The notes beneath the pieces are model-generated. The model saw only the letters and a program-made list of their open reading frames with translations, was not told the DNA's origin and searched no databases. 64,000 bases of DNA from Octopus sinensis (taxonomy: Eukaryota), in NCBI RefSeq assembly GCF_006345805.1, contig NW_021825323.1, positions 62,001-126,000 on the forward strand, written 5' to 3'. Positions 10,273 to 62,585 of the stretch are shown here, in pieces. Every line of letters starts with the position of its first letter. Positions within the stretch are counted from its first letter, which is position 1. A program made the translations under genes and the position numbers.

Positions 10273-10340
10273 CAATAAAAATGCTGTAAAAATCATGTAA
10301 AATATTACTCACGTTAGATAAATTTTGTTTTTTGTGTGCC

Positions 10341-11487: not shown

Positions 11488-12053
11488 CACCCCTCGTCAC
11501 CGAAAACCGGACAAGCCATTTTTTATGATTTTATTAATTAAATACAAAAAATCAAAAACGTACGCTTAATATTTTTACTTAATAATAATAATTGTGTATT
11601 AATTATTAATTATGCTATTATAGAACTAATATTTAAAGCAGAATTTCAATTTAGTTATGACATGTAAAACCGGACAAAACTTTTATAGATCTAAAAGTCG
11701 TTGAAAAGAAGCTAAAAATGTATAGTCAAAGAAGAAGTCACCTTTGAGATTTCCTGAAAGAACAAATTATTGCATTTTATAATCATAATATGTCACATGC
11801 CTCAGGGATTACTATGCCCCACTCGTTACCTCCGAATTATTTCTGAGAAATAATTGATTAATGATTTTTCAATTTTTTAGAAAAATTAATAATCAATCAC
11901 AACGACGAACGAACGAACGAAGAATTTTATTGTAAGAAAGAAGAGCGAGACAGAAAATTAGTGCGGAAAGTAATTTTGACGAGACGATTGCTTTGGGCAT
12001 TCGAGCTCTTCCATGGTTCGTCCGCTTTGTCTGTCTATGAGCAGGGACACCTG

Positions 12054-14650
12054 CTATTCTCCACGATCGATGAATAGGTCAGTTACTTTAGAGCGTTTCC
12101 GAAAAGTTCGGATAGAAGCCTCGATGGCCTGCCGTAGCTCTGGAGACTTGCTCTCCGCCCAGCTTGGGACAGGCTCCCATGGATTTAGCATATAGGCTAG
12201 TTTTAGAGCGTATCTCCGTATTTTTTCGCATTTTCGCAGAATTTTCTCATATTGTTTCGAGTAGAACCAAGCTTCCATACCATACAGTAGGCTGGGCAAG
12301 ATTGTTGCATGGTATACAAATAGGAAGGTATTTGGATTCAAGTGCATGCTTCTTAGGAGTCGGAGAGCGGCGATGGCTTTCCCTTTTCTCCGTTTGAAAT
12401 GCAAATGGTATCTCGAGTTTGCGTCGATTGTGAGCCCCAGGTAACGTATGCTCTCAGGGCGAGCAATTTCCACCAAAGAGCCGGGTTTGCGATCTTGCGA
12501 CTTTCTTGGGTTAATTTGGAGATATGCAGATTTGTCCATGGCCAGCGAGAGTCGCTTACCAATGCACCAATTCTTTATCTCCTCAATGTAGCCGGCAAGT
12601 CGTTTCTCCGAGGCATTGGTGTCCATCGAGGTGTCCAGAACGAGAACATCGTCCGCGTAGAGGAGTAGGGATGTCCTGGGATCGGAGGGTGTGGGGAAAC
12701 TGCTCATTACCAAATTGAAAAAGATTGGGCTGAGACAGGACCCCTGCGGAACCCCCCTTCGGAGCGAAATATATCTTGAGAAGAAGCCCGACTCAGAGAT
12801 AAAAGAGTAGCGATTTGAGAGGAAGCAGCGCATCCAGAGGAAGACTTCCGCTGTTGGCTCACAGAGTTCGATCCTTTCCAGGAGGTCTCTGTGCCAGACG
12901 CTGTCAAAAGCCTTTGAGATGTCCAGACATACAAGAGATAAAGTTTCTTTAAACTCCGTTGCTCTCGAGATGGTGGACTGTACCGTAATGAAACAGTCAC
13001 CGCAGCTACGTCCAGAGCGAAAACCCCATTGCTGCGGGAGCAGCACTTTCTTCTCTTCGGCGTGGAAGTCGAGGCGCTTGGCCATAATTTTCTCCATCAG
13101 CCTTGAGATAGTTGGGATTAGGCTTATGGGACGGTAGCTGCTAGCGAGATTCACCGGTTTCGCAGGCTTTTTGATCATCCGGACCTCTGAGATTTTCCAT
13201 TTTTCCGGCACATGGCCCCATTTGAGACTTGCCGTAAACAGATCCGCGAGGAACACATGTAGGTCTTCGGGTGCTTCCTTAAACAATCGCATCGGTATTT
13301 TGTCATGGCCCGGTGCGTTGCCTTTTGACGAACGGATGGCCCAGGTCACCTCTGCAATGGTGATCGGGTGATGGTCCGGCGACAGTGGGCGCGGCAGTGG
13401 CTCCGACTCCCGGTTTTGCGACGTTTCCGGATTGGCCTCCTGGATAGTGGCCAGGTGTTCTGCAAATATGTTTGGCATCTCTTGTGGCGAGGCGGGCATA
13501 CCAGACTGGTTGCACAACCTCGGGGGAGGATTTTCCTTCGAGGTTAGCCACTTTGTGGAAACAGTCCCAGAAATTTGGGTTTCTGTAGTCCAGGTTTTGA
13601 CAAGCCTTCTGCCATTTCCTGGCTGCTTCCAGCTTTGTCGCGACGTGGACCTTATAACCAATTTCCGAGATCATGTTCCTAAGTCTTCCCCTGTCAGCTG
13701 GGTCCACACAGCGTTTGAGTTTATTTCTCAGCCGCTTCCTTTCGTTGAGGATGATCTTCACTTTCACGCTCAGAGTGGTCCTCCGTGCGCGGTCTGCACT
13801 TGACAATTCTCCGTACGACGTTAGATACTGAAGCATGAATTTGCTTAGCTTATCGCTTGCGGAGTCGATGTCGAGGGCTGAGTTATACCCAACAGGGCGA
13901 CCGTTGTCGTGCAGGAATGCACTTATGGAGCTCCTGTAGTGTGGCCAGTTGATCTTTGAGAGATTGTAGTGAGAGGAAATGTGTTCTTGTCTAACAATGC
14001 TAGTGTGAATTTTGATCTCCATTGGTAGGTGGTCACTTCCGATATCGTCAAGGACTGTAGGCTTTTCCATAAGGTTAGCGACAGAGTGAGAACAGATGCA
14101 CAGGCACAGGTTGTCCCCGCCAAAGGGCGAGTGGTGGTTCGGGTCTTCGGATGTCCTGACGAAAACACCAAGCTTGTCAGTGACCTTCTTCAGTGTTCGA
14201 CCATCTTGGTTGGTTAACCGACATCCAAACGCCGTGTGCTTCGAGTTTAAGTCTCCGATAAGAAGGCAATGAGCTGTGCTTGAGAAGAATTCGTCAATCA
14301 ATCTGATGCAGGGGGGGAGATATTTGCAATATATTCCACCGACCTTTATCCAGAAGGAATCAGTTTTCACCTCAAGAGAGAGGAATTCGCACACCGTGCT
14401 CTCGATGATGGTGAGGTTACGGATTTGGAGGTTTTCGGCGTAGAAGATGCTCGAGCCAGTCCCTGGCGTAGAGCAGCTTCCCCATTTTAGGTCCACTGAC
14501 CGGTAGCCCGGAAGTTCGTACGAGTGGTTTTCTTTGAGCTTAGACTCGTTGACGACAATAATGTCTGGATGGCCGCTGTTTACCATCTCAACGAAGTCCT
14601 GGTGCCGTCTCTTGATAGATCGGGCATTCACAGCGATGATTTTGACTGGG
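12054..14650 (-). pseudogene. LINE A ORF2 (APE endonuclease plus RT), one frameshift near 13540
   Basis: IVVNESK, GDLNSKH, GSDHLP; YRPISL, QWGFR, DISKAFD, GVPQG, YADD. Confidence 0.92.
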
Positions 14651-14697
14651 GCTATGTTGCTGGCGTGCTCCCCTCTAATAGGAGCCGTTGCAGCACC

Positions 14698-15954
14698 TCA
14701 GGTTCCACACCAAGTTTGGTTAGAGCTCCCACACAACGATGAAAGAATTCCATAAGGGAGTCTCTGTTGTGCAGGTCTTCGTCCGAGAGGGCACCTCTTT
14801 GCGATGAGATATTGTCTGGAGGGGTGTTTCTTCTTGCGAGCAGCAGCCGTGCGGCCAGCTCTGGTACTGGAACAAGTGTCAGCCGTCGGCTTCGGGTCGA
14901 GTTTAAAATCAAAGTCGGAGTCCGCCGATGTCTGAATGCAGACATCAGTCTTGATCGGATTCACAACTGGCCTCTTTGTCCAGATCGACTCTGTGCGTTC
15001 GGCTTTCACCCAGCGAGCTGGGTTGCTGGCCGGCGGATTTCTCACAGCCCGTAAGGCTGCAGACGCGGCTTTGGCGAATGGGCATCCACCGTAACATGCC
15101 CAGTGTCCAGGACTGTTGCAGTTTATGCAGGTCTTGACAGCAGGGTCATTTGGTCTGGGGTCTGAGTTCGGACACCTATTGTGTCGGTGTTCGCCACCAC
15201 AGACCAAGCAACGAACTTTTTCGGTGCACTTATGGGACGTGTGTCCAAATTGGTGACACCGAAAGCATCTGACTGCCGGGGGCTTGTGCCATTCACATCG
15301 GATATGGCTGAAGCCCGCAGTTATTCCAAAGCGGATGAGGGTGTTGGCCTCTGCTCTGGAATCCAGGGTGAGTCTGCCGACAGGCATGTCTGTTCCATTG
15401 CGAGAGAATCTTTCGAACTTGAAGTCCGATTCTAGACTTTCTCTCAAGTGGAGGTTAAGATCCTCTGTCGAGATCCAATGAGGGATTCCTTTAAGGATCA
15501 AGACTGAGGCCTTCTCAGCTATTGAGGCAAGTTTATGGCCGCCTTCGCCAAACATATTCGATTGAGTCAGCTCTGCTTTGAACGCAGCAGCATCCTCGGG
15601 CGATCTGAATTTTAGAATGAAGGTGCCGGACTTCTGCAAAGTTATCCGAGCTTTGGAGGCAGTTAGCGACTTGGATAGGAGGTTAAACCTCTTGATCTTT
15701 CCAAGCGTCGGGTTTTCAATACTCAAGGAATATGTGAGGGTCTCATGGGATTGGGTCTCACTCTGTTTTTGGGGCCCAGTAGGCTTCGGCAGTTCTGTGG
15801 GATCCTCAGCTTTGATTGGTTCACAAAAGGGCTGTGGCTTTGCCGCTGTTCGTCTTTGAGCTTTGGCGCAAGCTTTGATTGATGAGAGATTTTGATTATT
15901 CTTGACCATTTTTTCTTTCTTTTCCTTGACCATGATATTCAATCCGATATTCAA
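14698..15954 (-). CDS. LINE A ORF1, gag-like nucleic-acid-binding protein
   Basis: Three zinc knuckles: CFRCHQFGHTSHKC, CLVCGGEHRHNRC, CINCNSPGHWACYGGC. Confidence 0.88.
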   Translation of the reverse strand: MNIGLNIMVKEKKEKMVKNNQNLSSIKACAKAQRRTAAKPQPFCEPIKAEDPTELPKPTGPQKQSETQSHETLTYSLSIENPTLGKIKRFNLLSKSLTASKARITLQKSGTFILKFRSPEDAAAFKAELTQSNMFGEGGHKLASIAEKASVLILKGIPHWISTEDLNLHLRESLESDFKFERFSRNGTDMPVGRLTLDSRAEANTLIRFGITAGFSHIRCEWHKPPAVRCFRCHQFGHTSHKCTEKVRCLVCGGEHRHNRCPNSDPRPNDPAVKTCINCNSPGHWACYGGCPFAKAASAALRAVRNPPASNPARWVKAERTESIWTKRPVVNPIKTDVCIQTSADSDFDFKLDPKPTADTCSSTRAGRTAAARKKKHPSRQYLIAKRCPLGRRPAQQRLPYGILSSLCGSSNQTWCGT

Positions 15955-16421
15955 TCCGATATTCGATATTTTTTTTTTTCATCACAACGACATAAAATTC
16001 AACCTATATATTAGGTTAATTAGAGTACAATTTAATGATATACTAAAAGATGCTTTAAAACAAATAAATTAAAATAATATTTTTATACAACAAACCATTT
16101 TGACTGATAAGCACATTAAAACATATTTTAAAAATGTGAATTGTGTGAAACGCTTTAAAGGCACATAATTTGATAGTTTTATAATTAACTCTAACCAGTT
16201 TTTAGTTTTATTTAAAACATTTTTTGAAATGTAAAAAGATAAAGGTTTAAAATCATCTGTAGATCTCTTATAAAAAACTCAAACTTTATCCAGTTTTTTA
16301 GTTTAAAATCATATATAGATCTGAAGTTTAAAACGAAAAATTAAATTTGTCCTTTTTTTGATTCTTTTCATGTGAACATCTTTGTATCTCCATTCGAAAA
16401 TTCTACTTTAAATTTTTTCAA

Positions 16422-16672
16422 ACCCTAAACCCAACCAATTCCCTAACCTTCACCCTAACCCTAACCTTCACCCCCAAACCCTAACCTTCACCCAACCCTA
16501 ACCTTCACCCAAACCCTAACCTTCACCAACCTAACCTTCACCCAAACCCTAACTAACCTTCACCCAAACCCTAACCTTCACCCAAACCCTAACCTTCACC
16601 CAAACCCTAACCTTCACCCAAACCTAACCTTCACCCTAACCCTAACCCTAACCTATACCCTAACCATAACCA
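16422..16672. repeat. Degenerate telomere-like (CCCTAA)n array with an ~18-bp higher-order unit
   Basis: Repeats of CCCAAACCCTAACCTTCA and CCCTAA, internal to G3. Confidence 0.9.
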
Positions 16673-17739
16673 TGAGATAAAACAGCATGCTTAATTTATT
16701 GTTTTTTAATGATAATGGTTAAGCATTGAAAAAATAAAAATCCATAATATTATTAATTTTTAAATTAATAAGTAAATATATTTCAATCATTTAAATATTT
16801 TAAATTGAAATTTTAAAAATTTAGAGCAATGGTAACGAGCGGGGCATGGTAACGAACAGGGCATGTGACATAATATGACTTATCGAATGATTTCTGCAAG
16901 TATAGGAGTCCCAAAATCAACTGTATCAGATGTGATTCAGAAATTCAAAAAAACTGGATCAATTAACAGACATCCGGGAACTGAAAGAAAGAAAATATTG
17001 AAAGAGGAAGAAATTTTAATTTTAGTAGAACTATCAAATAATACCCCCAATAAAAGTGTCAAAACTCTTAGCATCGAAATTAAAACTATGTTCAAAAAAA
17101 AATTTCAACAAGAATAGTATCTCGAATTTTAAATAAGAAAGGATTATATGGCCGAGCTGCTAAAAGAAAACCTCTTTTATCCACAAAAACTATAATTTTA
17201 AGACGTGAAATTACGAAATCATTTTTAAGCATTTCCGACAAGACATGGAAGTTGGTAATTTTTACTGATGAATGGTCTTTTGATATTTTTAATACCAATA
17301 AGCATCAAATAGTGTATATAGAAAATGGTTCTGCATACAAAAAATGCAATATTATCCCAACTGTAAAATTCGGTGGTGGAAAAATAATGGTCTGGGGCAG
17401 TTTCTCATATAACGGAGTCGGTAATCTTGTTTTTATTGACGGAATTCTTAATAGCGCAAAATATATTAATATTTTATCCAATAATATATTCGAATGTGCC
17501 AAAAAATTCGGGATAGACTCATTTATTTTACTACAGGATAATGGACCTTGCCACAGATCTAAAATGGTGCAAGATTATATTAAAGAAAAAAACATTATTT
17601 TACTTCAATGGCCGGCTCAATCACCGGATCTAAACCCCATAGAACATCTATGGGCAGAAATGAAGAGAAAATTATCAAAAAATGTAGTTCAAAAACAAAA
17701 ATGAGCTAAAGGACAAATTAACAGAAATATGGAATAATA

Positions 17740-19713: not shown

Positions 19714-20095
19714 TATTATGTCACATGCCCTGTTCGTTACCATGCCCCGCTCGTTACCATTGCTCTAAATTTTTAAAATTTCAATTTAAAATATTTAAAT
19801 GATTGAAATATATTTACTTATTAATTTAAAAATTAATTTTAAACCTTTATCTTTTTACATTTCAAAAAATGTTTTAAATAAAACTAAAAACTGGTTAGAG
19901 TTAATTATAAAACTATCAAATTATGTGCCTTTAAAGCGTTTCACACAATTCACATTTTTAAAATATGTTTTAATGTGCTTATCAGTCAAAATGGTTTGTT
20001 GTATAAAAATATTATTTTAATTTATTTGTTTTAAAGCATCTTTTAGTATATCATTAAATTGTACTCTAATTAACCTAATATATAGGTTGAATTTT

Positions 20096-21181
20096 ATGTC
20101 GTTTCTCGTATCAAAGATGAGGAGGGGTCACACTCCTCTCAAGTCTCTGAACAATCCAAACTGTACTGAGTCTCTTGTCCTCTCGCTGCAGATAAAAAAT
20201 TATGCGATTGGACGAATAAAGTCCTTTAATATTCTAACCAAATCCGAGACTGCACAGAAGGCCCGAATTACTGCCAGGAAGTCTGGGGACTTTACCCTCG
20301 AATTCTCAAATTCTAGTGACAGGGACTCGTTTGTGAATGACTTCGAGTATAACAAACCATTTGGCCAGGACGGCCATTATATTTCTGCGTGCAGTCTGCA
20401 ACCATCGACCGTAGTCTTGAAGGGAATACCATCTTGGGTCTCCGAGGAAGACCTGGATCTTTACCTCAAAGAAATTCTCAACCCCGGTTTTACTTTCCAA
20501 CGGTTCTACAAAAATGGACGGAGTGTACCTGTTGGAAAGTTGAGTCTGAATTCGAGGGCAGAAGCCACTTCGCTTGTAAGGATGGGAATCGAAGTGGGAT
20601 TTCAAAAAATACGATGCGAATGGTTTAAAAACCCAGCAACAAGATGCTTTCGCTGCCAACAATTTGGTCACATTGCTAACTTCTGCAAAGAAGTGGAAAG
20701 ATGTCTTTTCTGTGGTGGTGATCATAATATGAAAATGTGCCCGATTAAAGGAAAAACTGAGAAAAAATGTATAAACTGCGGTCTGAGTGGGCATTTGGCT
20801 TGCTACGGTGGCTGCTCTTCAGCTAAGGCAGCCACTGAACAACTAAAAAAGCAGCTCAGTGCCAGGGACAGACTGGCCAAAGCAGAACACTCAAAAACTG
20901 TATGGTCAAAAGCGGAGGCCGTTGAATCTGTATGGCGAAAACCCACAATTTCCCGCTGTTTTGACTCCTCAACGCAAACAGATGTTAGTGAAGACGCAAC
21001 TTTGCCTCCCAATACACAACACACAGAGCCTCCAACCCGCTTTAAGAGGAAAGCACCAACTATCGACGTTGAGCTTACCTCTATGATTCGCAAAATAATC
21101 GCTATATGCGATGAAAAAGGCCTCGATATCAACAATCTGTTGTCCCTTTCTCTTGGAAGGGAAAGGATTGATCAGGCGTGA
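20096..21181 (+). CDS. LINE B ORF1, gag-like protein with three zinc knuckles
   Basis: CFRCQQFGHIANFC, CLFCGGDHNMKMC, CINCGLSGHLACYGGC; aligns by eye with LINE A ORF1. Confidence 0.88.
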   Translation: MSFLVSKMRRGHTPLKSLNNPNCTESLVLSLQIKNYAIGRIKSFNILTKSETAQKARITARKSGDFTLEFSNSSDRDSFVNDFEYNKPFGQDGHYISACSLQPSTVVLKGIPSWVSEEDLDLYLKEILNPGFTFQRFYKNGRSVPVGKLSLNSRAEATSLVRMGIEVGFQKIRCEWFKNPATRCFRCQQFGHIANFCKEVERCLFCGGDHNMKMCPIKGKTEKKCINCGLSGHLACYGGCSSAKAATEQLKKQLSARDRLAKAEHSKTVWSKAEAVESVWRKPTISRCFDSSTQTDVSEDATLPPNTQHTEPPTRFKRKAPTIDVELTSMIRKIIAICDEKGLDINNLLSLSLGRERIDQA

Positions 21182-23971
21182 GCCCCTTTCTGTCTATTAT
21201 CGCTGTGAACGCACGTTCTCTAAAGAGAAGGCGTTCAGAGATTGAGGATATGTTATCCCATAACCCCGTGGACCTTTTGATCGTAAACGAAACAAAAATC
21301 AAAAAACATGATGATTACTACTTGGATGGCTATCGTTCCCTTGATATTAAGTGGAAGCCGGGCTCGATCGCTGGAACAGGCACTTCTATCTACTACAAAT
21401 CAACTCTAAGGGTGAAAAATCTAAAAATTGTGTCCGAGGAATTGTGTGAATTCCTCACAATCGACGTCCTTCTGGAAAAAGGGTGGGTAACAATCGGAGG
21501 GATGTACTCAAAATCCCTTTCCAATTACTCATCGCTTATCAAGGACTTTTTTGCCGATAAACACAATCATTTGTCAATACTCCTCGGGGATCTAAATGCC
21601 AAATGCACATCTTTTGGCTGTCTGAGAACCAACAGGGATGGCATCATTCTTAAGAAGCTTTCAGAATCTCTCAGTTTCTCGGTCATCACATCAAAAACCC
21701 CAAATCATTACTCACCAGGAGGGTGGGACTATTTGGGCGTAGCATTGGTCTCTATGTCTACTCTTCAATTTATGGAACAACCGTACACCTTAAATGATAT
21801 TGGAAGTGACCATCTACCAATTTTATACAAACTCAACCTTGGACCTTTAAAGGGTAAACCAACTTTTATACGATATAACCTCTCGACTATAAACTGGGAA
21901 CACTACCGAAAATGTTTTACACTTTATCTGAGCAATTTCGCTCCTAAACTTGACGAAAATTCTTCATCTGAGGACCTCGAGAAGTCTAGCAATTCCCTTA
22001 TTGGATACATAAAGTCTTATCTGGAAACATATTCTACAAAAATCGTCTCAAACAATAGGAAAACTCACATGCCAAACATGAATGTTGAAATCCTACTAAG
22101 GAAAAAACAATGTCTAAGGAACAAACTCCGGCGCTGCGCAGATTTTCGTGACCGGTCCGTTTTGGAAAGTGAAATCTTCACCATTACGGAAGAAATAAGA
22201 AAATCGGCGAAGGTGGCGAAGGATAAAAAATGGAATACTGAGTGCAAAAAGCTACATAAAGGAAGTCCAAATTTTTGGAAGGTCTACTCGAAATTAACCT
22301 CGACGTCTGAGAAAACTATACCTAAACTGCTAAAACAAGATGGATCCCCTGCATCTCATGAAGAAATCCCGAACATATTTGCTGATAGTCTCAAAAGAAT
22401 ACAAGAAGTCAATCCGGATACAAATCTATCTGATTCAGCTTTGTTTGATATGGAAAAAGAGTTGGAAGACAATCTTAGCTCATTACCAATGTGCTCGGAA
22501 TCTATAACGTGCAAAGACGTGGAAAATGCAGTTAGATACTCCAAAAATAACGCTCCGGGAAAGGACAAGATAACCATGCGCATGTTCAAAGAAGCTCCCA
22601 AGCAACTTTACGAATATTTGGGATGTCTCTTCTCCCGCAGTGTGAGCTTGGGATACGTCCCTTCTTCATGGAAACTGACGGAGGTAAGGATGATACGGAA
22701 GCCTGGAAAACCTGGTTACTTGGCGACAAGTTATAGGCCTATAAGCCTAATTCCTACCATCAGTCGAATAATGGAAAGGGTAATGTTTGAACGACTCTCT
22801 GAACACGTCGAGAGAAATGGTTATCTCAAAGACGTGCAGTGGGGCTTTCGGAGGGGTCGTTCCTGTGCTGACTGTCTTTATACACTCAATTCGTCGATTG
22901 TAAAGGCTCTGGATTTCAAAGAGTGTCTGACAATTGTGTCTCTAGACATCTCAAAAGCCTTTGATATGGTTTGGCACCTCGGTCTCCTTAGACATCTGGC
23001 GAAGTGTCACATAGACAAAGGACTATTCCTATGGCTAAAAGACTTCCTCCGCGACAGGCGCTCTGTGATAAGCTTTCTGAACTATGACTCGGATGAACTG
23101 AAACTTAAAAGAGGCGTCCCTCAAGGATCAGTCCTCAGTCCTCTATTATTCAACATTGTGATGAGCAATCTGCCGTCTCCTGTCAACACACGGACGGAAA
23201 TTTTGATATACGCCGATGATGTTGTAATCCTTGACATTTCATCGAAACCTGCCTTATCCGAACAAAGGATTATATCATATATGAATACAGTGGAGCAATG
23301 GTGCGATGAAAATATGTTCATTATTGCGCGTGAGAAGTCCGCATTACTGAGAATCACAGAAAGCAGAAATTTAATAAATTTACCGTGCCTGATCAAGAAC
23401 ATACCTCGACAAAACTCAATTAAATATCTTGGCTTGTTCATCGATGAAAAGGAAACTATCTCGAAAACGCAAAATTAAGTAAAAGGAAAGCAACTAATGC
23501 TCTGTTCTGCCTGAGGAAGTTAAATTTGGAGCCTGATACTTTCCTCTACGTTTTCAATACGGTGATCCTACCGGGACTACTATACGGAAAAGAGGGATGG
23601 TACTTCTCTAAAAAGAAGGACACCATCTTAACTAAATTTGAAAAGTCTCGCAGGCTCGCTTTGAAGCTTGCTTACCACCAAAAAGTTGAAGATCCAATCC
23701 CCCTGTGGCTTGAAAGTAAATCCTCCATGGTCGGTGAAACTGTCGAAAAAGCTATAAGTGGTTATAAATCCAACTCAATTGTCACTGGGACGTACCTGCA
23801 GAGGTAGAAAAGAAAAAAAAAAAAAAAAAAAAAAATTTACTTGAGAGGGTCTCTTTTTTTTTTCTGGGAAGAAGTCGATAGGGTAGTCCTATTGTTTCAT
23901 TATACAAACTCCCCCCTAACCTTTAACCCTTCTCTGTTTCCAATAAAACTTCCTATTCCTATTTCTCTCTC
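20104..23971 (+). mobile_element. APE-type LINE B (Jockey/I-like), divergent from LINE A
   Basis: TSD TCGTT (20099-20103, 23972-23976); AATAAAA and a CT-rich tail. Confidence 0.92.
21178..23807 (+). pseudogene. LINE B ORF2 (APE plus RT), frameshift near 23450
   Basis: 766-aa ORF with GDLNAK, GSDHLP, YRPISL, GVPQGS, YADD; C-terminus in ORF 23526-23807; overlaps the ORF1 stop (GTGA). Confidence 0.92.
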
Positions 23972-24146
23972 TCGTTGTGATTGATTATTAATTTTTCTAA
24001 AAAATTGAAAAATCATTAATCAATTATTTCTCAGAAATAATTCGGAGGTAACGATTGGGGCATAGTAATCTCTGAGGCATGTGACATAATAGCATAATTA
24101 ATAATTATTACACAATTATTATTATTTTTTTCCGGTTTTACATGTC

Positions 24147-26715: not shown

Positions 26716-27090
26716 ACCTTCAAGGCAAAAATCTCACGTATTAAGAATATCCTTGATGAAAACGACAGCGAGAATATTAACAATGATGAACTCCCAATTA
26801 TTCGCGATAAAGAAATTCAATTCATCCTATGTTTTTCTCTTTAAAATTAATTGCATATATCATTATCGACCATGAATCAAAATTAAAGCTATTATCATAT
26901 TTGACTTTGACAGAATGTGCAATCACAGATTGCACGACTTTGAATAGAGTGTGCAATTAACAGATTTTGAAAAACCACTTTGATAGTTGAAACCACATTA
27001 GCACAATCATTAACACAATTTACCACCAATTGACGCACGACCTTGAATAGAGTGTGCAATTAACAGATTTTGAAAAACACTTTGATAGTT

Positions 27091-32100: not shown

Positions 32101-32218
32101 ATTCGAACAAGTTGCGCAGGAGATCCAAAGCTTACGACTGTTCGAAGAGTTGCAAATGATACAAGTTTTCATTAGATTGCGAACACCACGTCAAAAAACC
32201 AGCACGCGATATACTGAC
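29177..32218 (-). mobile_element. Full-length CRE-clade retrotransposon (PHD finger, RT, RLE), degenerate
   Basis: ORF pieces 31177-32172, 30878-31183, 29267-30775 (two stops, one frameshift); GVQQGDPLGP, WYLDD, GKRPDG; possible TSD GTTGATT. Confidence 0.9.
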
Positions 32219-45866: not shown

Positions 45867-47405
45867 TGTCGCGAGCGCAGCGCGCGACCGAGCGCTAGAC
45901 GCGACTTTGACAGCTAACAAGCCTGTCATCAACAAATATATTTATTAAATTATTTAAAATTTTAACATGATTTAAAATTAAAATTGAAATAACTTAAGTT
46001 TTCCATTGAATCCCATAAAATAATTTATAAGTAGACCTTAATAGAAAAAGTAAAATCAATGAATACTGAACGCTAATTTGGTTTAGGTTGTGAGGGGGGT
46101 AATAATTTGACAGATCTCATTGCTATTTTTTCGTTTTAATCTCTAAAATTAGGTCTTCTAATCAAAAATAAACTGTGCAGACAGGCTTGCTCCTTCAGAA
46201 GATTCTTGTTTTGACATTTTAATAAATTATGAAGCATTTAGATTTTTTCTCATTATTCTAAAATATAAATTATAAATTGTAAAATATTATTTTTATTTAT
46301 GAAATCGGTTTTAAAGCTCATTCTGCTTTGGCATCGATTTTAATTTTTGTGATCGAATATATTTAAACCCAAATACCAGCCCGTGTATTTGTCACATTTC
46401 AAAGGCGTTCGACAGCGTTTGGCACCTAGGCCTCCTGGAAAGGATCATCAGTATCCATCCGGGGCAAAGGACTGTCAAATGGCTAGAGAATTTCTTACAC
46501 ATGCGAAAGTCTTTTATCAGATGTGGTAACCGGACCTCGGATACAATCAATCTAAGGAGGGGAGTGCCTCAAGGGTCGGTCCTGAGCCCTCTACTTTTCA
46601 ACTTATACGTTGCCGACATCCCGAAACCAGTAAATCCGGAGAGTCTACTAATCATCTATGCGGACGACATATTGGTTACGGATCTGTCGCGATCCAAGGA
46701 CCTCTCTTGGAAAAGGCTGAGGGAATATATAGCGAGGGTTGAGTCTTGGGCTACGGAGAAAGCCCTCTCCTTAGCACGAGACAAGTCCACCATCACGTGG
46801 GTTTCTAAAACTCGGAAAGGAAGAGAACCACTTCTGGAGACAATGGGACTAAGAATCTCTGACGACCTAAGCTACCTTGGGGTAACGATCGGGGCTGACG
46901 GATCGTTCCTTAAGTTCGTGGAATCTAGAAGAAGGAAATGTTCCGGGATCCTGAGAAGCCTTATACGCTTCCATCTCTCCCCAGACACCTTTCTCTTCAT
47001 CTATAAGGCGACTGTAGAACCAGTCCTTATCTATGGACATGAAGGTTGGTACCCTACAGACGAGAGAAATCGCATAATCACCAAACTGGAGAAAACAAGG
47101 CGCTTTGCGATTAAACTGGCGTATAAGCTACGGCTTGATCAGGATCTCCCCAGAGAGCTAGACGAACAAACTCAAAACATTCGGCAAGTCCTCTGCTCAT
47201 TGCAAAGGGCATGAGAAGTGAAAAGGAAAGCAAGGAGGAGGCTTTCGGTGTCTCGATTTTAATAAAACCTTTTCATATAACTCTTCTCTTTCGGTTGCTA
47301 AGTCAATAAAATCTGTTCGTTCGTTCGTTCGTGTATTTGTCAATTTATAGATTTGTTGATTGATCGGATCTAGAAATTGAGTGGTCGCTCGCTGCGCTCG
47401 CGACA
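45867..47405 (+). mobile_element. Non-autonomous Ginger-like element G7 (family Y) carrying a truncated LINE C
   Basis: TGTCGCGAGCGCAGCG TIRs; TSD TAATA; interior nearly identical to G8; ends similar to G1. Confidence 0.9.
46395..47329 (+). mobile_element. 5'-truncated LINE C (3' half of RT)
   Basis: GVPQGS, YADD; (TTCG)n tail; 13-bp TSD CGTGTATTTGTCA. Confidence 0.9.
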
Positions 47406-52900: not shown

Positions 52901-53016
52901 ATGGTTGTTCCAAAGAATATCCATTGCGATCCTGAGGGGCAACGTCTTCTCGATCATCAGCAGCTTAAGATTATGATGATCATTTTCGCTCTTTGATTTT
53001 AATAAGAATCACTTTC
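49997..53016 (+). mobile_element. Full-length, near-intact CRE-clade retrotransposon (PHD finger, RT, RLE)
   Basis: ORFs 50036-51001 and 50991-52976 joined by one frameshift near 50947; GVQQGDPIGP, WYLDD, GKRPDG; 11-bp TSD AATGATTTAAT. Confidence 0.92.
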
Positions 53017-54749: not shown

Positions 54750-55895
54750 TAAATGTGCGAATTCAGATCACAAGCTAGTGATTTGTTAGACAATGAACCC
54801 GAAATGGAGATCTTTGCTAAAAGTTTGCATGACTTCTCGCATGGAGGAGTTAACAAATTGAATATGAATGTCGACAACGATATTTCACAGTTAAAAATGA
54901 GATTATTCGAAAAGTCATTCGAAACTGTGAAATTTGTAAATTTGCGCGACCCTTAAAAGTTTAACTTTTTTAAATCCTAGATTGGAGATATAAATAACCA
55001 TGTCTTTGCATCTTGCCCAAATGAAAGATTTCAGATAGATCTTATAAATCTGAAAAGTTTTTCTACTGTAAATAAAAATTTTAAATGGATTTTAACGGTC
55101 ATTGACGTATATAGCAGGTTAGTTTTTTTAACAATTTTTATAGATTTGCATTTGCGAGGCCGCTCTACACTAAGTCCTCAAATGAAGTTTGTGAAAACCT
55201 CAGATCATTATTTTTCTTAAATGGTCCGTGACAATTTCTTCGGTCCGATAATGGGACTGAATTCAAGAATCGTGAAATGACCAATATATGTGAGGAATTC
55301 AATATCAAACGAATTCACGGAAGGCCAAACAATCCCCGCTCACAAGGGATTGTCGAACGCTTCAACCAGTCAATTACAAGAAAAATGGCAAAAATGATCG
55401 ACAATGATAATAAAAAGTGGCTGGAAAAATTAGAAAATGCAGTGTACAGTTATAACATTTCTGTCCACTCATCTTCTAATGAGAGCCCTTTTGAAAGATA
55501 CCGGGGAATAAGTGGAATAAATACAATATTTTATGGTTGTAATTATAAAATTATTCCTTAGATAATTCAAGTAATGATTTGTTGAGTCCTGATCGATGAT
55601 GCAAACAATTGTCCGAGTCCAATTGAAAATTCATGTAATTTGAATTTCTATATGTAGATATAGACTGTAATTATTCGTTTACAAGTCCGAAAAGATTTCA
55701 GTTCGAAATCAACCCCATTGATCCTAATTCTAATTATTACAAAGCGATGAACAGAAAAATGAATGTTCACAATAGTAAGTATGAATTTAGTGTTGGTGAT
55801 AAAGTATGCATAAAAATTAATGTTTAGGTTCGAGTTAAAAAAGACTTTGGATCAAATCCTTCGTTGCGACTGGATAAGTTTGAATCTCCATATTA
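54750..55895 (+). pseudogene. Ginger-type integrase remnant (G9), interrupted by G8; resumes at 60740
   Basis: FQIDLINL, VIDVYS/RF (intron 55118-55143), SDNGTEFKN, QGIVERFNQ. Confidence 0.8.
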
Positions 55896-56366
55896 TGTCA
55901 CAGGCGCTACCGGTTACCGAGCGCTAGACGCGACTTTGACACCTAACAAGCCTGTCATCAACAAATATATCTATTAAATTATTTAAAATTTTAACATGAT
56001 TTAAAATTAAAATAACTTAAGTTTTCCATTGAATCCCATAAAATAATTTATAAATAGACCTTAATAGAAAAAGTAAAATCAATGAATACTGAACGCTAAT
56101 TTGGTTTAGGTTGTGAGGGGGGTAATAATTTGACAGATCTCATTGGTATTTCTCGTTTCAATCTGTAAAATTAGGTCTTCTAATCAAAAATGAACTGTGC
56201 AGACAGGCTTGCTCCTTCAGAAGATTCTTGTTTTGACATTTAAATAAATTATGAAGCATTTAGATTTTTTCTCATTATTCTAAAATATCAATTATAAATT
56301 TTAAAATATTATTTTTATTTATGAAATCGGTTTTAAAGCACATTCTGCTTTGACATTGATTTTAAT

Positions 56367-58196
56367 TAGAGTCACTCATACATCGGGCAGCAGTTCACAC
56401 GACAAAACAAATTGAAAGTCTGGACCAGCTCGTTAGGAATCTTATCAACACTTCTTTGGAGAAGTTCTCCAGGAAAAAGTTCATTAAACACTCTGGTGGA
56501 GGGACTCATGAACTCGACGACACAGTAGTGAGTCTCCTGAAAGAAAAGGCAAGATACCAGAAGAGGCTACGCAGATGTTTTGACCCAACAGACTGCACAC
56601 GCCTACGAGCAATGATTTCCTCTCTTAAAAAGAGGATCGACAAAAGGTCTAAAGAAAACATTGACTCAGCTTGGAGATTGGAATGTTCTAAGCTTAATCG
56701 AAGACACCCAAGTTTCTGGAAGGCATATAATCGCCTAAAGGAAACGGAATGCAAAGGAGATGAAATCAATTTAACCACAGAAAATGGCTATGCTATCAAC
56801 CGAGACGATGTACCTGACGCTTTACGTCAACAACTGGCGAAAATTCAAGATGTCGACCCGAGCTGTTTGGTCCCGACAGATATAATGGACGATAAAAAGA
56901 GGGCAATAGCCTCTGCGAAAATGTCCCCTGGTCGACTTTGTCACGCAATCACCCTGGATGAAACCCTACTAGCAATTAAAAGATGCAAGGACAACGCACC
57001 GGGTTTTGATTACATACCCATCCGAGTCTTCAAAGAGGCCCCGATAAGCCTAGTCAAGATAATAACGATACTTTTCAATGCCAGTTGGGAGACTGGATAC
57101 GTCCCGAATGCATGGAAAAAAACCGTGGTACGAATGATTCCAAAGGCAGGGAAACCTAAAGACCGTGCAGAAAATTTCCGACCCATAAGTCTCATCTGCT
57201 CCATATCAAGAATCATGGAACGTATAATCTTTAAAAGATTATCTATTCTCGTGGAGGAGTCAGGTTACCTGGCTAAAGAACAATGGGGTTTCCGACGTGG
57301 GAAGTCCTGTGGAAACTGCTTTGCCCAACTGGAAACGCAAATCTCGAGGGCCCTTACACACAAGATGGGGATGACAGGACTTCCCACGTCGGAAACCCCA
57401 TTGTTCTTTAGCCAGGTAACCTGACTCCTCCACGAGAATAGATAATCTGTTAAAGATTATACGTTCCATGATTCTTGATATGGAGCAGATGAGACTTATG
57501 GGTCGGAAATTTTCTGCACGGTCTTTAGGTTTCCCTGCCTTTGGAATCATTCGTACCACGGTTTTCTTCCATGCATTCGGGACGTATCCAGTCTCCCAAC
57601 TGGCATTGAAAAGTATCGTTATTATCTTGATTAGGCTTATCGGGGCCTCTTTGAAAACTCGGATGGGTATGTAATCAAAACCCGGTGCGTTGTCCTTGCA
57701 TCTTTTAATTGCTAGTAGGGTTTCATCCAGGGTGATTGCGTGACAAAGTCGACCAGGGGACATTTTCGCAGAGGCTATTGCCCTCTTTTTATCGGAAGAA
57801 GGAAATGTTCCGGGATCCTGAGAAGCCTTATACGCTTCCATCTCTCCCCAGACACCTTTCTCTTCATCTATAAGGCGACTGTAGAACCAGTCCTTATCTA
57901 TGGACATGAAGGTTGGTACCCTACAGACGAGAGAAATCGCATAATCACCAAACTGGAGAAAACAAGGCGCTTTGCGATTAAACTGGCGTATAAGCTACGG
58001 CTTGATCAGGATCTCCCCAGAGAGCTAGACGAACAAACTCAAAGCATTCGGCAAGTCCTCTGCTCATTGCAAAGGACATGAGAAGTGAAAAGGAAGCAAG
58101 GAGGAGGCTTTCGGTGTCTCGATTTTAATAAAACCTTTTCATATAACTCTTCTCTTTCGGTTGCTAAGTCAATAAAATCTGTTCGTTCGTTCGTTC
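56367..58196 (+). mobile_element. LINE C-type fragment with an internal 421-bp foldback
   Basis: ORF 56456-57424; 57374-57794 is the inverse of 56890-57310; 3' end identical in type to LINE C with a (TTCG)n tail. Confidence 0.85.
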
Positions 58197-58203
58197 GGGT
58201 ATT

Positions 58204-59663
58204 AATACACGGATGCAATCAAATTAGCAATACACGGATGCAATCAAATTAGCAATACACGGATGTAAAAATAAATCCCCTGGTTGGGACTACATACCGA
58301 TGATTATCTTCAAAAAGGCGGGAATGCCTTTGTTGTACGAACTATGGAAGTTATTTAACTTTTCGTGGAGTATTGGACATGTTCCCCAAGCATGGAAGAG
58401 GACAATTGTTCGCATGATCCCGAAGAAAGGAAAACCGAGTTCGGATCCTGCAAATTACAGACCAATCACCCTCATATGTTCTATCTCAAAAATCATGGAA
58501 AAAATTGTCTTTAAAAGACCATCAACTTATATTGAAGATAAACAGTATCTCTTGAAAGAGCAATGGGGTTTTCGGCGGAACAAGGGCACTGGAAATTGCT
58601 TTTCACTGTTAAAGGAGGCCATATCTACAGCACAAAGGAAAAAAGAGTATCTTACGGCTGCATGTCTAGACATATCAAAAGCATTTGATAGCGTCTGGCA
58701 TGCCGGGCTATTACGAACTTTATACAATTTTAACGTTGGAAAGACAGCCCTAGTTTGGATGAAGAGTTTCCTCTCGGAAAGAGAATCGTTTGTACGGGTC
58801 GGTAACCAATTATCGAAGAGAATTTTGCTTAAGAGAGGAGTTCCGCAGGGATCTGTCATCAGTCCACTTTTATTTAACTGTGTGATGTGCGACATCCCTC
58901 AAGTGGATCTCCCTAGCATGGAGATGGTCATCTACGCAGATGATATTTTAATTATGGATTTCTCTATGAGCAAATCAATATCGTGGAAAAGAACCCATAG
59001 TTATATCGAAAAAATTGGCAAATGGTGCAGGATAAAGGCTTGTCTTTATCTTTTGAAAAAAGCACTGTTTGCTGGATTGTTGGAAGGAGAAGGAAACCTG
59101 ATGTTTGTATTAACACCGGAGCGATAAAACCCGTGGATGATCTTAAATACCTCGGAATAGTTGTGGATGCAACTGGTTCATTCAAGATGTATATAAGGAA
59201 GAGAAAGAACAAGGCTACCCAAATGTTGAAAGCTCTGATGCGATTCCAGCTGAAACCGGAAACGTTCTTATACGTATACTCTGCGTGTATAGAACCCTTC
59301 CTGATCTATGGATCTCAAGGATGGTTCGGAAGCTGCGAAGGAAAGAAACATATTGATCTTTTGGAGAAAACGCGGAGATATGCCATTAAACTGGCACATG
59401 GCTTGGACTTAAAATCCAAACTAACCCCAGAGCTGGAGGGATCGGTACGATTTATTGAAAAACTGTTGCATCACTTAAATAAATAGTGGTGCAAGGGGTC
59501 ATTATTTTTATCGAAGGGACATCTGGTGTCCCATTAGAGTTGACCCCAATCAGCAAACAAACTTGGTTCTTCCGTCTCCTTGGTTTCGTTTGGCTCTTCT
59601 CTCCCCCTTTTAATCTAGTGACGAGTTTGTTACATAGAAAATAAACAGTTCAATTCAATTCCT
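58204..59663 (+). mobile_element. 5'-truncated LINE D (distinct family)
   Basis: RT ORFs 58300-59127 and 59022-59486; TSD GGGTATT; 25-bp tandem duplication at the 5' junction. Confidence 0.88.
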
Positions 59664-59675
59664 GGGTATTTGTCA

Positions 59676-60643
59676 GCTGTTTGTCTGGAAATTTCAAAGG
59701 CGTTCGACAGCGTTTGGCACCTAGGCCTCCTGGAAAGGATCATCAGTATCCATCCGGGGCAAAGGACTGTCAAATGGCTAGAGAATTTCTTACACATGCG
59801 AAAGTCTTTTATCAGATGTGGTAACCGGACCTCGGATACAATCAATCTAAGGAGGGGAGTGCCTCAAGGGTCTGTCCTGAGCCCTCTACTTTTCAACTTA
59901 TACGTTGCCGACATCCCGAAACCAGTAAATTGGAGAGTCTACTAATTATCTATGCGGACGACATATTGGTTACGGATCTGTCGCGATCCAAGGACCTCTC
60001 TTGGAAAAGGCTGAGGGAATATATAGCGAGGGTTGAGTCTTGGGCTACGGAGAAAGCCCTCTCCTTAGCACGAGACAAGTCCACCATCACGTGGGTTTCT
60101 AAAACTCGGAAAGGAAGAGAATCACTTCTGGAGACAATGGGACTAAGAATCTCTGACGACCTACGCTACCTTGGGGTAACGATCGGGGCTGACGGATCGT
60201 TCCTTAAGTTCGTGGAATCTAGAAGAAGGAAATGTTCCGGGATCCTGAGAAGCCTTATACGCTTCCATCTCTCCCCAGACACCTTTCTCTTCATCTATAA
60301 GGCGACTGTAGAACCAGTCCTTATCTATGGACATGAAGGTTGGACTGTAGAACCAGAACCAGTCCTAATCTACAGACGAGAGAAATCGCATAATCACCAA
60401 ACTGGAGAAAACAAGGCGCTTTGCGATTAAACTGGCGTATAAGCTACGGCTTGATCAGGATCTCCCCAGAGAGCTAGACGAACAAACTCAAAACATTCGG
60501 CAAGTCCTCTGCTCATTGCAAAGGGCATGAGAAGTGAAAAGGAAAGCAAGGAGGAGGCTTCCGGTGTCTCGATTTTAAATAAAACCTTTTCATATAACTC
60601 TTCTCTTTCGGTTGCTAAGTCAATAAAATCTGTTCGTTCGTTC
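59676..60643 (+). mobile_element. 5'-truncated LINE C copy
   Basis: Nearly identical to 46395-47329; TSD GGTATTTGTCA. Confidence 0.9.
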
Positions 60644-61084
60644 GGTATTTGTCAATTTATAAATTTTTTGATTGATCGCATCTAGAAATTGAGTGGTCGC
60701 TCGCTGCGCTCGGTAGTGCCCAGCGCCTGTGACATATTATCCATCTGCAGAAATTATCAGTATTTTATCAAACAATCGCGTTGAGGTAGTTTAAACATTT
60801 AAATTTAATAGATAAAAAATTCGATGAGCGAAATTTCGATTGTGCCAATGTCCAGACTTAAAAAATAATTAACAAGTTATTATTCTTTGAAGTTTAATAC
60901 AAGGTCACGTCAGGTATCACGCGGCCCATAGGTGTCACGCAAACCATGTCACATAATTGTAGATAGAATGAAAACCATTACGTCTAAAGATTGTGTAAGC
61001 TTTATTTCTGGAATACAGGGAAATATTGCCGACACACTAAATATGGTTAACATAAAATTTTAAAAAAAGAATTTTTTGGTGTTA

Positions 61085-61323
61085 ATCCCATTTAGTTAGC
61101 TATTTTTTTTTTTTCCATATTGATCCCATATTGTTTGGTATCAATCCCAATTAGTTTTATGTTAATCCCATTTAGATTTAGATTTTTGCTAATCCCACTT
61201 AGTTTGACGTTAATCCCATTTAGTTTTCTGCTAATCCCAACTAGTTTTTTGCTAATCCCATTTAGTTTTCTTCTAGTCCCACTTAGTTTGGTGTTAATCC
61301 CATTTAGTATGGGAAATGGTATA
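61085..61323. repeat. Transposon end with ~21-bp subterminal repeats (TTAATCCCATTTAG)
   Basis: Terminal GTTAATCCCATTTAGTATGGGAAATGGTATAG is shared with about 49315-49346. Confidence 0.65.
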
Positions 61324-61335
61324 GTTTTTTGCTTA

Positions 61336-61753
61336 CAGGGTATTTCATTAATATATCCTCTAATTTCATAAATATATCCTCTGATTTCATAAATAAATCT
61401 TCTTATTCCATAAATATATCCTCTTATTTCATAAATATATCCTCTTATTCCATAAATATATCGTGTAATTTCATCAATATATCCTCTTATTTCATAAATA
61501 TATCGTTTTATTGTGCACATAAAACTATCATGAATAGAAAATCTAGAATTTCAATGACACAAGAAATAATTATTTATAATATACGATATATTTATGAAAT
61601 AAGAGGATATATTGATGAAATTACACGATATATTTATGGAATAAGAGGATATATTTATGAAATAAGAGGATATATTTATGGAATAAGAAGATTTATTTAT
61701 GAAATCAGAGGATATATTTATGAAATTAGAGGATATATTAATGAAATACCCTG
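61336..61753. mobile_element. Foldback-like MITE with 171-bp TIRs built of 21-bp repeats
   Basis: Arms 61336-61506 and 61583-61753 are inverse copies; CAGGGTATTTC termini; TA flanks. Confidence 0.85.
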
Positions 61754-62585
61754 TAAAAAGATTGTTGATAATTTTAAAGAATTCTTTTAGAATTATTGTT
61801 TACGCATAGTATGGGTTGCTAAGATGGAGAAAAGAGAGACTGAGGGAGTAATTCTTTTAGTAAGAAGCTTGATTCAAGATATAATTGTTTTTAATGCTTA
61901 TTTTCCAAGTAGTTGATATAAAGCTATGAAGAAATTCAATTACCTGGTCCTTAATTAAACATTAGATCGATATGTTGGATGTTGTTTTTAATTATAATTT
62001 GGAGTTCTTTTTTTTCTATAGGGACTCTGGGTTTTTTAATAGTATTAAGTTAATCTTTTATCCGAGCCTGAATAACTGGGAATCTTATTCTTGATCCCAT
62101 TAATGTTTATTTGATAGATGGATAAATAACGTTATTGATTTAGCTTAAAGTTCGAAAATTTAATGATTAAAACTCTTTCACTACATAGAATAGGAAATAA
62201 AGTGAATTCACTTATAATAGGAAATCTTTCTTCTTGTGGGATTATTAATGAAAAAAATACAAATTTGTTCGACAATAATTTTTTAATAAATTTCTCTTAT
62301 TTCGGAAAGGCTAATTAAATTTATGTTTAAGAATTGGAAGGCGTTTCCATTTTTAGGGAATCACTTTGAGACACCCCGAGGAGCTTGGATAGAATCAAAC
62401 GTCTCATTGTTTTATTTTAGAAAAAAGAAAGGATAAGCTCGAACCTGTTTGGCTCAAGTAAAGACTTAGTTTGGCAGTATTCCGAGTTAACGTTTTCGCT
62501 ATCATCACCAGTAGTCATCCTTAACTTCCAAATATTCAATATTTGATGTTAAAATAAATTCAATATAAACGGATAAACCAAAAAA

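Follow-up and report, generated by a model that had tools for sequence, protein, structure and literature searches.

The LINE stack in host element G8

The stretch analysed here, 64,000 nucleotides of Octopus sinensis DNA (contig NW_021825323.1, positions 62,001 to 126,000; hereafter the window), contains a DNA transposon, G8, whose interior is occupied by three long interspersed nuclear elements (LINEs) standing head to tail. G8 (55896-60734) is a bounded insertion with termini TGTCACAGGCGCT.../...AGCGCCTGTGACA, and TATTA flanks it on both sides (55891-95 and 60735-39). Its LINEs belong to two families, C and D, and its arms can be compared with those of host copy 1, the other copy of the same transposon family (family Y) in the window. 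The parts of G8 are as follows (aa, amino acid; APE, apurinic/apyrimidinic endonuclease; RT, reverse transcriptase; TSD, target-site duplication; UTR, untranslated region).

55891..55895, no strand: left 5-bp TSD of G8, TATTA; the identical pentamer is at 60735-60739
55896..56367, plus strand: G8 left arm, family Y, non-coding, terminus TGTCACAGGCGCT...; 437/451 identical (3.1% mismatch) to the host copy 1 arm 45888-46345, with homology ending at 56367
56368..57376, plus strand: direct 5' segment S1 of LINE C #1 (post-APE linker and N-terminal RT), ending ...GGGATGACA; frame open from 56369, RVT_1 match, 39-41% aa identity to LINEs A and B
57378..57794, minus strand: S2 of LINE C #1, an inverted duplicate of S1 positions ~56890-57314; palindrome in self-BLAST, 5/423 differences between the arms, CA/CAG microhomology at the turn
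57795..58197, plus strand: 3' segment S3 of LINE C #1, 3' UTR and (TTCG)4 tail (58182-58197); 2/402 mismatches to the LINE C of host copy 1, period 4 by TRF
58197..58203, no strand: GGGTATT, left TSD copy of LINE D, the first 6-7 nt of the target; same heptamer at 59664-59670, right after the D tail
58204..59663, plus strand: LINE D, 5'-truncated in the RT, one frameshift, tail ...TTCAATTCAATTCCT; RVT_1 match with E=3e-31, 49% aa identity to C, 5' tandem repeat by TRF
59664..59675, no strand: (G)GGTATTTGTCA, right TSD copy of D and left TSD copy of LINE C #2; the exact 11-mer recurs at 60644-60654
59676..60643, plus strand: LINE C #2 (S5), 5'-truncated, starting GCTGTTTGTCT, (TTCG)3 tail; 6/930 mismatches to the LINE C of host copy 1
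60644..60654, no strand: GGTATTTGTCA, right TSD copy of LINE C #2 and native target adjoining the right arm; junction read from the sequence
60655..60734, plus strand: G8 right arm, ending ...AGCGCCTGTGACA; matches the copy 1 right arm at 55/58 sites and differs from it in the outer 22 nt
60735..60739, no strand: right TSD copy of G8, TATTA; matches 55891-55895

An earlier note, made from the sequence of the window, had described three LINE 3' tails abutting one host sequence in G8, and we found all of the junctions at the coordinates it gave. The tail of LINE C #1, ...GTTCGTTCGTTCGTTCG, extends to 58196/58197, with G/GGTATT (58197-58203) coming next. The tail of LINE D, ...TTCAATTCAATTCCT, lies directly 5' of GGGTATTTGTCA (59664-59675), and that of LINE C #2, ...GTTCGTTCGTTC(G), directly 5' of GGTATTTGTCA (60644-60654), after which the host right arm begins. 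The TSD of C #2 is 11 (or 10) bp long and that of D is 7 (or 6) bp; the 1-nt ambiguity arises because the TTCG tail ends in G. The spacers GGGTATT and GGGTATTTGTCA separate head-to-tail copies whose 5' ends lie at differing LINE positions and which come from two families. C and D are indeed separate families, as the same note had it, with 49% aa identity over 416 residues and ~68% nucleotide identity over ~220 bp. At one mismatch or fewer, GGTATTTGTCA occurs five times in the 64 kb against 1.4 expected occurrences, and 4/5 of these flank LINE C copies. The observation of three tails at one sequence is confirmed and is far beyond chance.

C #2 contains frameshifts and has 22 bp duplicated internally. 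At its 5' end (58204-58265) LINE D carries part of its own coding sequence (AATACACGGATGCAATCAAATTAGC) as a perfect tandem duplication, 25-bp x 2.5, and the join GGTATT/AATAC at this end forms a 10-bp palindrome. G8 as a whole interrupts a frameshifted gene for an rve integrase (54950-55895, 60740 onward) in its C-terminal, GPY/F-like region (...KKDFGSNPSLRLDKFESPYYV); a homologous C-terminal fragment is present at 12792-12857 of another O. sinensis contig, L001.

LINE sites and hosts within and beyond the window

Both family-Y copies in the window carry LINE C, and the second of them holds it as a single insertion.

45867..47405, plus strand: host family Y copy 1, termini TGTCGCGAGCGCAGCG.../...CGCTGCGCTCGCGACA, TSD TAATA, one LINE C at 46395-47331; supplies the uninterrupted left-arm-to-target sequence

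The LINE C of copy 1 is flanked by perfect 11-bp TGTATTTGTCA (46384-94 and 47332-42), at the same nucleotide as in G8. In the two family-Y copies the 3' ends of three C elements and of D abut one nucleotide, (K)GTATTTGTCA. The arms of G8 and copy 1 are 96.9% identical, 17/509 sites being different (3.3%), whereas the LINE C copies differ at 6/930, 2/402 and 3/398 sites (0.5-0.75%), which makes LINE C about 5-fold less diverged than its hosts (Fisher p=2e-4). Because the LINE C copies are far less diverged than the host arms, they are, judged by this comparison, younger than the split of the two hosts and independent insertions. Their 5' ends also differ (56368, 59676 and 46395). A composite miniature inverted-repeat transposable element (MITE) inherited together with its LINE is rejected on the same divergence values.

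G8 and copy 1 share their interior and have different termini. About 22 nt, TGTCACAGGCGCT..., stand in place of TGTCG(CGAGCGCAGCGCGCGAC) at both ends (55896-55917/60713-60734 vs 45867-45887/47401-47405). The difference resembles a symmetrical exchange of termini between subfamilies, perhaps reflecting a change in the cognate transposase. Copy 1 interrupts an open reading frame (ORF) with P-loop (GPSNSGKT) and NKxD-like (NKSD) motifs (45640-45866/47411-47470), which may be a degenerate small-GTPase-like gene or an NTPase borne by a transposable element.

The same arrangement, with other LINEs and another target, was found in a second host family, X.

11791..16870, minus strand: host family X copy X1, TGTCACATGCC... 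termini, TSD TAATA, full-length LINE A from 15981 to 11906 with a (TTCG)4 tail; LINE A TSD TCGTTGTGA at 15982-90 and 11897-905
19719..24086, plus strand: host family X copy X2, full-length LINE B at 20104-23971, LINE B TSD TCGTT; its tail abuts the base that LINE A abuts in X1

X1 and X2 are copies of one TGTCACATG...-ended element. The tails of LINEs A and B abut one base, ATG^TCGTTGTGATTG, ~115 bp from the right end of host X; the tail of B is TTCCTA/CT-rich and its TSD is 5 bp long, and the TSD of A measures 9-11 bp. On comparing X with Y we found no motif common to the two targets and no homology between the hosts, only AT-rich noise and a shared TGATTGAT. Although X1 and X2 carry different LINEs and are inverted relative to each other, identity is 100% between their left arms (268 + 126 bp) and 97.5% between their right arms; X2 has TATTA on one side and TAATA on the other, a mismatched pair. 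These features point to gene conversion, a recent inverted duplication or an effect of assembly.

The four LINE families resemble one another more than anything else that we found. Over the RT region, aa identity is 49% for C-D, 46% for A-B and 39-44% for the cross pairs, so the closest pairs follow the hosts, A-B on X and C-D on Y. The best external aa matches reach at most 36% with C as query and 40% with B, the latter to one protein of O. sinensis, P0121. The six clade members of the 64-kb window all lie at an X or a Y site; tblastn revealed no further member there, and the other RTs of the window are only 23-30% identical. By these identities A-D are shown to be one local clade of APE+RT LINEs. 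LINEs A and B have ORF1 and ORF2, the latter with Pfam matches to Exo_endo_phos/Exo_endo_phos_2 and RVT_1; the APE domain is intact in both LINEs. RVT_1 is likewise present in LINEs C and D, the copies of which are 5'-truncated, and no further Pfam domain was found in the scanned parts of ORF2. By eye, CCHC-type Cys/His motifs can be recognised in the ORF1 of both A and B, and Pfam gave one weak zf-CCHC match, in B. Neither a C-terminal Cys-His motif nor an RNase H was found in ORF2, which in A, C and D stops ~100 aa past the RT core; the same holds for the frame-shifted C-terminal piece of B.

L1/Tx1 elements carry a C-terminal Cys-His motif after the RT in ORF2. Judged by architecture, A-D are not of the L1/Tx1 type. 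Elements of the R1 clade have an ORF1 with three CCHC knuckles and an ORF2 with APE and RT. This layout is common to Jockey- and I-type elements too and is hence not diagnostic for R1. The nearest named proteins are labelled 'jockey' at 26-29% identity. A protein search with a LINE C composite gave nothing above 36% identity, and an exact-protein look-up of the LINE C ORF gave no match. Exact-DNA scans of metagenome contigs with the LINE C 3' end and the host right arm gave no match, nor did such a scan of contigs from prokaryotic genomes. Searches of PDB by sequence and by profile gave no informative placement of the APE domain, returning TRAS1 at E=0.66 and no L1 endonuclease match, and an Rfam scan of the whole window had no match and so pointed to no ribozyme or small-RNA target.

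Three O. sinensis loci were reached via annotated proteins, adding 55 kb beyond the window. P0121 led to contig L001, and contig L003 was reached via an integrase, not a LINE. On L001, LINE F (60% aa identity to C) lies inside a hAT element (6910-12756, 8-bp TSD GAGATAAG). Its tail is 146 bp inside the hAT right end, and it is downstream of and co-oriented with the hAT transposase ORFs, this being the only coding host seen. On L003, LINE G (49% aa identity to C) lies inside a hAT-like element (11391-16082, 8-bp TSD ATCATATT); it has a 13-bp TSD, TATAAATGCTAGA, situated 60 bp inside the right end and overlapping the hAT subterminal AAATGCTA repeats. A further fragment, LINE H (L003 19191-18470), is without both ends and is uninformative. 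The informative 3' ends of the clade, six in the window and two in these contigs, are found without exception (8/8) in a DNA transposon, at 60-150 bp from its right end. The suggestion of the earlier note that these LINEs form a transposon-targeting system is supported by the window sites and by the two hAT loci.

Nine elements of the window (G8, copy 1, X1, X2 and five more) end in TGTC(A/G)... and have 5-bp AT-rich duplications, TAATA, TATTA, AAATA or CAATA. Those with these termini include 8729-10272, 11791-16870, 17740-18428, 18518-19713, 45867-47405 and 55896-60734. The TSD is TATTA for G8, TAATA for copy 1, X1, an element W and H1 (see below), AAATA for a 23.6-kb element and CAATA for 8729-10272. 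This indicates a marked T-A-W-T-A-like target preference of the host superfamily. The 23.6-kb element has Y-type termini and holds an rve fragment (10919-11380). It corresponds to the stretch 8639-32296, which is bounded by TGTCGCGAGCGCAGCG.../...GCGCTCGCGACA and contains X1, X2 and LINEs A and B. Excising 8639-32296 with one TSD copy restores a 732-aa minus-strand ORF of a LINE with a restriction-like endonuclease (RT plus a C-terminal PD-(D/E)xK-like region), and because excision restores this continuous ORF, the stretch is one giant, heavily nested, real insertion. H1 (L001 12965-16685) is an apparently autonomous relative, whose terminal inverted repeats (TIRs) match at 28/29 nt and whose HHCC+rve integrase ORF is annotated as 'KRAB-A domain-containing protein 2-like'. 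No autonomous element bearing G8's own termini was seen in the sequences examined.

Elements of the Ginger2/TDD group have TGTNR termini, an AT-rich target and an integrase-like transposase, and TDD-4 and TDD-5 make 5-bp TSDs (PMC2836005; PMC6839031). The present hosts resemble them in their TGTNR...YNACA termini, TIRs and AT-rich target, and an integrase-like transposase is seen in the apparently autonomous relative. In contrast, metazoan Ginger2 elements have 4-bp TSDs and TIRs of 50-180 bp, while the hosts here have 5-bp TSDs and TIRs of 13-28 bp, and the outer 22 nt of G8 and copy 1 differ. Because of the TGTNR termini, the AT-rich 5-bp TSD and the apparently autonomous relative with an rve integrase, it is reasonable to call the hosts Ginger2/TDD-like, strict membership going beyond this evidence. 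The label 'Ginger-like' MITE family given in the earlier note holds for the termini, the AT-rich TSD and the rve relative; the 5-bp TSD length fits TDD-4/5 and not metazoan Ginger2.

Several other repeats and ORFs were recorded. TTAGGG-type telomere-like repeats (GGGTTAGGGTTAG...) occur at 17940-18125, in 61-bp tandem units inside the TGTCACATGGG...-ended element 17740-18428. About 13 tandem units of ~94-95 bp, 95-97% identical, fill 25453-26721. An array of ~30-bp TTAATCCCATTTAGTT-like repeats at 61050-61320, found also at L001 4838-5129 with 76-84% identity, is followed by a 424-bp near-perfect palindrome (92%) of ATATCCTCT...CATAAAT repeats at 61333-61756. ORFs with an N-terminal PHD finger stand beside or before a weak or divergent RT at 50036-52976 and 29267-32172 (minus strand); this unclassified retroelement type is present at least twice. 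Further DNA-transposon superfamilies are represented by ORFs with a MULE transposase domain (4279-5463, minus strand) and an IS1595/Merlin-like DDE domain (40309-41046). Repeats common to the window and the other O. sinensis contigs include 28557-28775 (L001 2004-2222, 99.5%), 7167-7547 (L003 1-379, 97.4%) and 25096-25284 (L003 9166-9354, 98.9%). These identities mark the source as O. sinensis or a species very near to it.

Origin of the stack

Taken together, the positions of the 3' ends support the view that a small group of related LINEs repeatedly enters certain DNA transposons at one exact nucleotide close to the right end. Serial target-primed insertion at a site regenerated by the TSD is the best explanation of the G8 stack, and we consider it probable. 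G8 would then be a non-autonomous integrase-type (Ginger2/TDD-like) transposon of ~600 bp, with a LINE site, (K)GTATTTGTCA, ~90 bp inside its right end, and this site would serve the sub-lineage C + D of the local APE LINE clade. The LINE endonuclease would nick the bottom strand just left of the target (KGTATTTGTCA in Y; TCGTTGTGA in X), and the freed 3'-OH would prime reverse transcription from the simple-repeat tail, which is (TTCG)n for C and TTCAA-like for D. The top strand would be cut 6-11 nt downstream in Y (5-13 nt across the clade), for C after TGTCA, and the duplicated target would bracket each insertion. Because the duplication contains the nick site, the target would be reusable, and three events, two of C and one of D, would leave a stack with 7-nt and 11-nt target spacers. 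Each of these steps has a precedent among the Tx1 or R1 elements described below. In a rightward order (C #1, D, C #2) every insertion would meet the native downstream context; a leftward order (C #2, D, C #1), in which every insertion would meet the native upstream context, fits equally well. We infer the nicking specificity as well as the order of events.

That the spacers are TSDs, and did not arise by read-through or template jumping, is favoured by the 11 nt that separate D from C #2, which is also the length of the TSD made independently by LINE C in copy 1. An insertion of LINE D into a pseudo-target internal to LINE C was considered as well and is rejected, the spacers being true target sequence. 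The proposal of the earlier note that each TSD regenerates the target and permits serial insertion agrees with the TSDs of D and C #2 and with their shared site; it does not extend unchanged to the leftmost C, which has a target-site deletion and is rearranged.

A number of points weigh against three clean insertions at a specific site. LINE C #1 is not a simple copy and is internally rearranged, with a direct (56368-57376), an inverted (57378-57794) and again a direct segment (57795-58197) and with 1-3-nt microhomologies at the S1/S2 and S2/S3 joins. Its 5' junction is without a TSD, and the host at this junction is short of 38 bp and the left target copy as compared with the uninterrupted host copy 1. 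The inverted duplicate may be an artefact, produced when a long read folded back. In LINE C coordinates C #2 follows S1 without a gap, and the history may therefore have been other than three clean insertions: S1 ends ...AAG ATG GGG ATG ACA and C #2 starts GCT GTT TGT CTG, adjacent codons (M-T and A-V-C-L) when read against LINEs A and D. The evidence for a sequence-specific nick is positional recurrence, the X and Y targets having no clear common motif, and the sample for site specificity comprises eight informative 3' ends in ~120 kb. No empty family-Y site was found for comparison in the sequence analysed.

As S1 stops and C #2 starts at one LINE C coordinate, the history of G8 is more complex than three clean serial hits. 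The motif TG[AT]CA occurs only three times in the 1959 nt of LINE C, and one of these (...GATGACA/GCTG) is the coordinate of the S1 end and the C #2 start. The TSD ends ...TGTCA, and a cut target end annealing to the cDNA at TG[AT]CA would fix the 5' end of C #2; the same motif may have been a preferred break or priming point for a fold-back or twin-priming-like rearrangement of C #1. The coordinate common to S1 and C #2 would thus be explicable because TGACA mimics the ...TGTCA end of the TSD. For the leftmost C we infer a target-site deletion, at integration or later, plus a rearrangement of the fold-back or twin-priming type with its break at ...TGACA. Nicking by the LINE endonuclease at an internal pseudo-target, GCTGTTTGTCT, was also entertained and has been downgraded. 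LINE C contains three 8/11 matches to the target; the simpler TG[AT]CA microhomology was retained.

Alternatively, the shared coordinate might mean that one long LINE C (S1 + C #2) at the right-hand target was later split at ...TGACA/GCTG by double-strand-break repair or template switching. The block between its halves, made of the S1 fold-back and 'C 3' end - GGTATT - D - GGGTATTTGTCA', would have been copied from another occupied family-Y element, or would stem from a single target-primed reverse transcription event jumping between read-through RNAs. The adjacent codons at the S1 end and the C #2 start are what this history predicts, and the S1/S2 palindrome with the microhomologies at the joins resembles template switching. 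We nevertheless regard the splitting of one LINE C as unlikely, and the two sources of the block as unlikely too: the copied block must stop exactly at the end of the 11-nt target, the length of the independent TSD of LINE C in copy 1, and a donor locus already with a C-D stack is required, which merely relocates the serial insertion. Mimicry of the TSD end, at a motif so rare in LINE C, can account for the shared coordinate. The stack or the palindrome or both might instead be an artefact of assembly, that is, a collapse or chimera of several family-Y loci with single LINEs, or a fold-back read. Near-identical repeats are certainly at hand, the LINE C copies being at most 0.75% apart, a 420-bp inverted duplicate being present, and the 100% identity of the X1 and X2 left arms marking the window as repeat-rich. 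The junctions are clean and the TSD logic is valid at every joint, however; the three C pieces carry private substitutions and indels, including the 22-bp duplication only in C #2, the palindrome arms differ at five sites, unlike a single-molecule fold-back, and the host TSDs of G8 match at both ends. An artefact of this kind is thus quite improbable.

The LINEs might, finally, have no target specificity, a single LINE C having spread passively in a composite MITE, or selection having made a safe haven of dead transposons. That both window copies of family Y bear LINE C, that the LINE C of host copy 1 begins just 13 nt deeper in the element than C #2, and that no empty site was seen would agree with this. 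Passive spread is contradicted by the lower divergence of LINE C relative to the host arms that carry it (p=2e-4) and by the different 5' end of C #1, and different families, C and D on the one host and A and B on the other, occupy in each case the same nucleotide of their host. Recurrence at a single nucleotide is beyond the reach of selection. We hold this explanation to be very improbable.

A wider proposal, which we put forward only tentatively and think somewhat less probable than its negation, is that Octopus harbours an undescribed non-Tx1 clade of APE LINEs that has radiated by switching DNA-transposon hosts (at least two Ginger2/TDD-like and two hAT families), each LINE family nicking a single fixed position, 60-150 bp in from the right end, towards which its 3' end points. 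If this is true, these LINEs would be hyperparasites of transposons, possibly co-transcribed with and carried by their hosts, and the endonucleases of the clade would amount to a naturally re-targeted series of site-specific nickases.

Comparison with known systems

LINEs that target DNA transposons have been described only in the Tx1 clade, in vertebrates (PMC1950540, PMC4494074). Tx1L of Xenopus laevis inserts into the piggyBac-type element Tx1D, and the Tx1L endonuclease itself nicks the site (PMC1950540). Tx1-Mar targets Mariner-N4_AMi, and Tx1-9_AMi targets a Harbinger element ~300 bp from its 5' end (PMC4494074). The octopus elements are like the Tx1L/Tx1D pair in that APE-type LINEs are found at one defined position in a multicopy DNA transposon family and that related LINEs use related or different hosts. 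They differ in lineage: Tx1 belongs to the L1 group, whereas the ORF2 of the present LINEs ends ~100 aa past the RT without a C-terminal Cys-His motif, CCHC-type motifs are seen (by eye) in ORF1, the tails are simple repeats, and the nearest named proteins are labelled 'jockey'. Their hosts, unlike those of Tx1, are integrase-type (Ginger2/TDD-like) and hAT elements, in a cephalopod.

The stack itself is closest to the R1 tandems of Drosophila, where the target TSD lies between copies, and differing TSD lengths and 5' truncations are taken as evidence of double insertion, the accepted origin (PMC5932611). G8 likewise has head-to-tail copies, a short target duplication between them and differing 5' truncations. 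R1 is inserted in 28S rDNA, and its large array grew by unequal exchange of one dimer; the target in G8 is a transposon, and its stack was not amplified from one unit, because two LINE families are mixed in it with 7- and 11-nt spacers. Of the parallel with R1/R2 arrays drawn in the earlier note, the R1 half is apt and the R2 half is not, and the Tx1 precedent was left unnamed there. Tandem insertion is also known for Utopia, sometimes, in U2 genes (PMC4640811). The R1 clade is one of three groups with most of the known target-specific LINEs (PMC4640811). The octopus LINEs are like its members (R1, TRAS/SART, Waldo, Mino) in having two ORFs, an ORF2 with APE and RT, and nucleotide-precise targets that an APE endonuclease would choose. 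R1-clade targets are rDNA, telomeric repeats and microsatellites, mostly in arthropods; here they are transposons in a cephalopod.

A paper on octopus LINEs deals with RTE and Dong elements only (PMC9115989). Our literature search found no report of a non-Tx1 LINE clade targeting Ginger-like or hAT elements and no report of site-specific LINEs in cephalopods. A separate cephalopod clade would be a second, independent origin of safe-haven targeting of transposons by transposons. Its related APE endonucleases, with short, defined and differing targets, would form a natural panel in which to study the re-programming of APE specificity, a matter of current interest for gene insertion based on LINEs. 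The arrangement would also be a route by which MITE-sized elements become multi-kb composites in the repeat-rich octopus genome, and the mixed-family stack is direct evidence for a TSD being able to regenerate a LINE target. The behaviour itself is known from frog Tx1L and fly R1. What is new here is the lineage and the host range, and the main importance would lie in a behaviour that spans a whole diversified clade and two transposon superfamilies.

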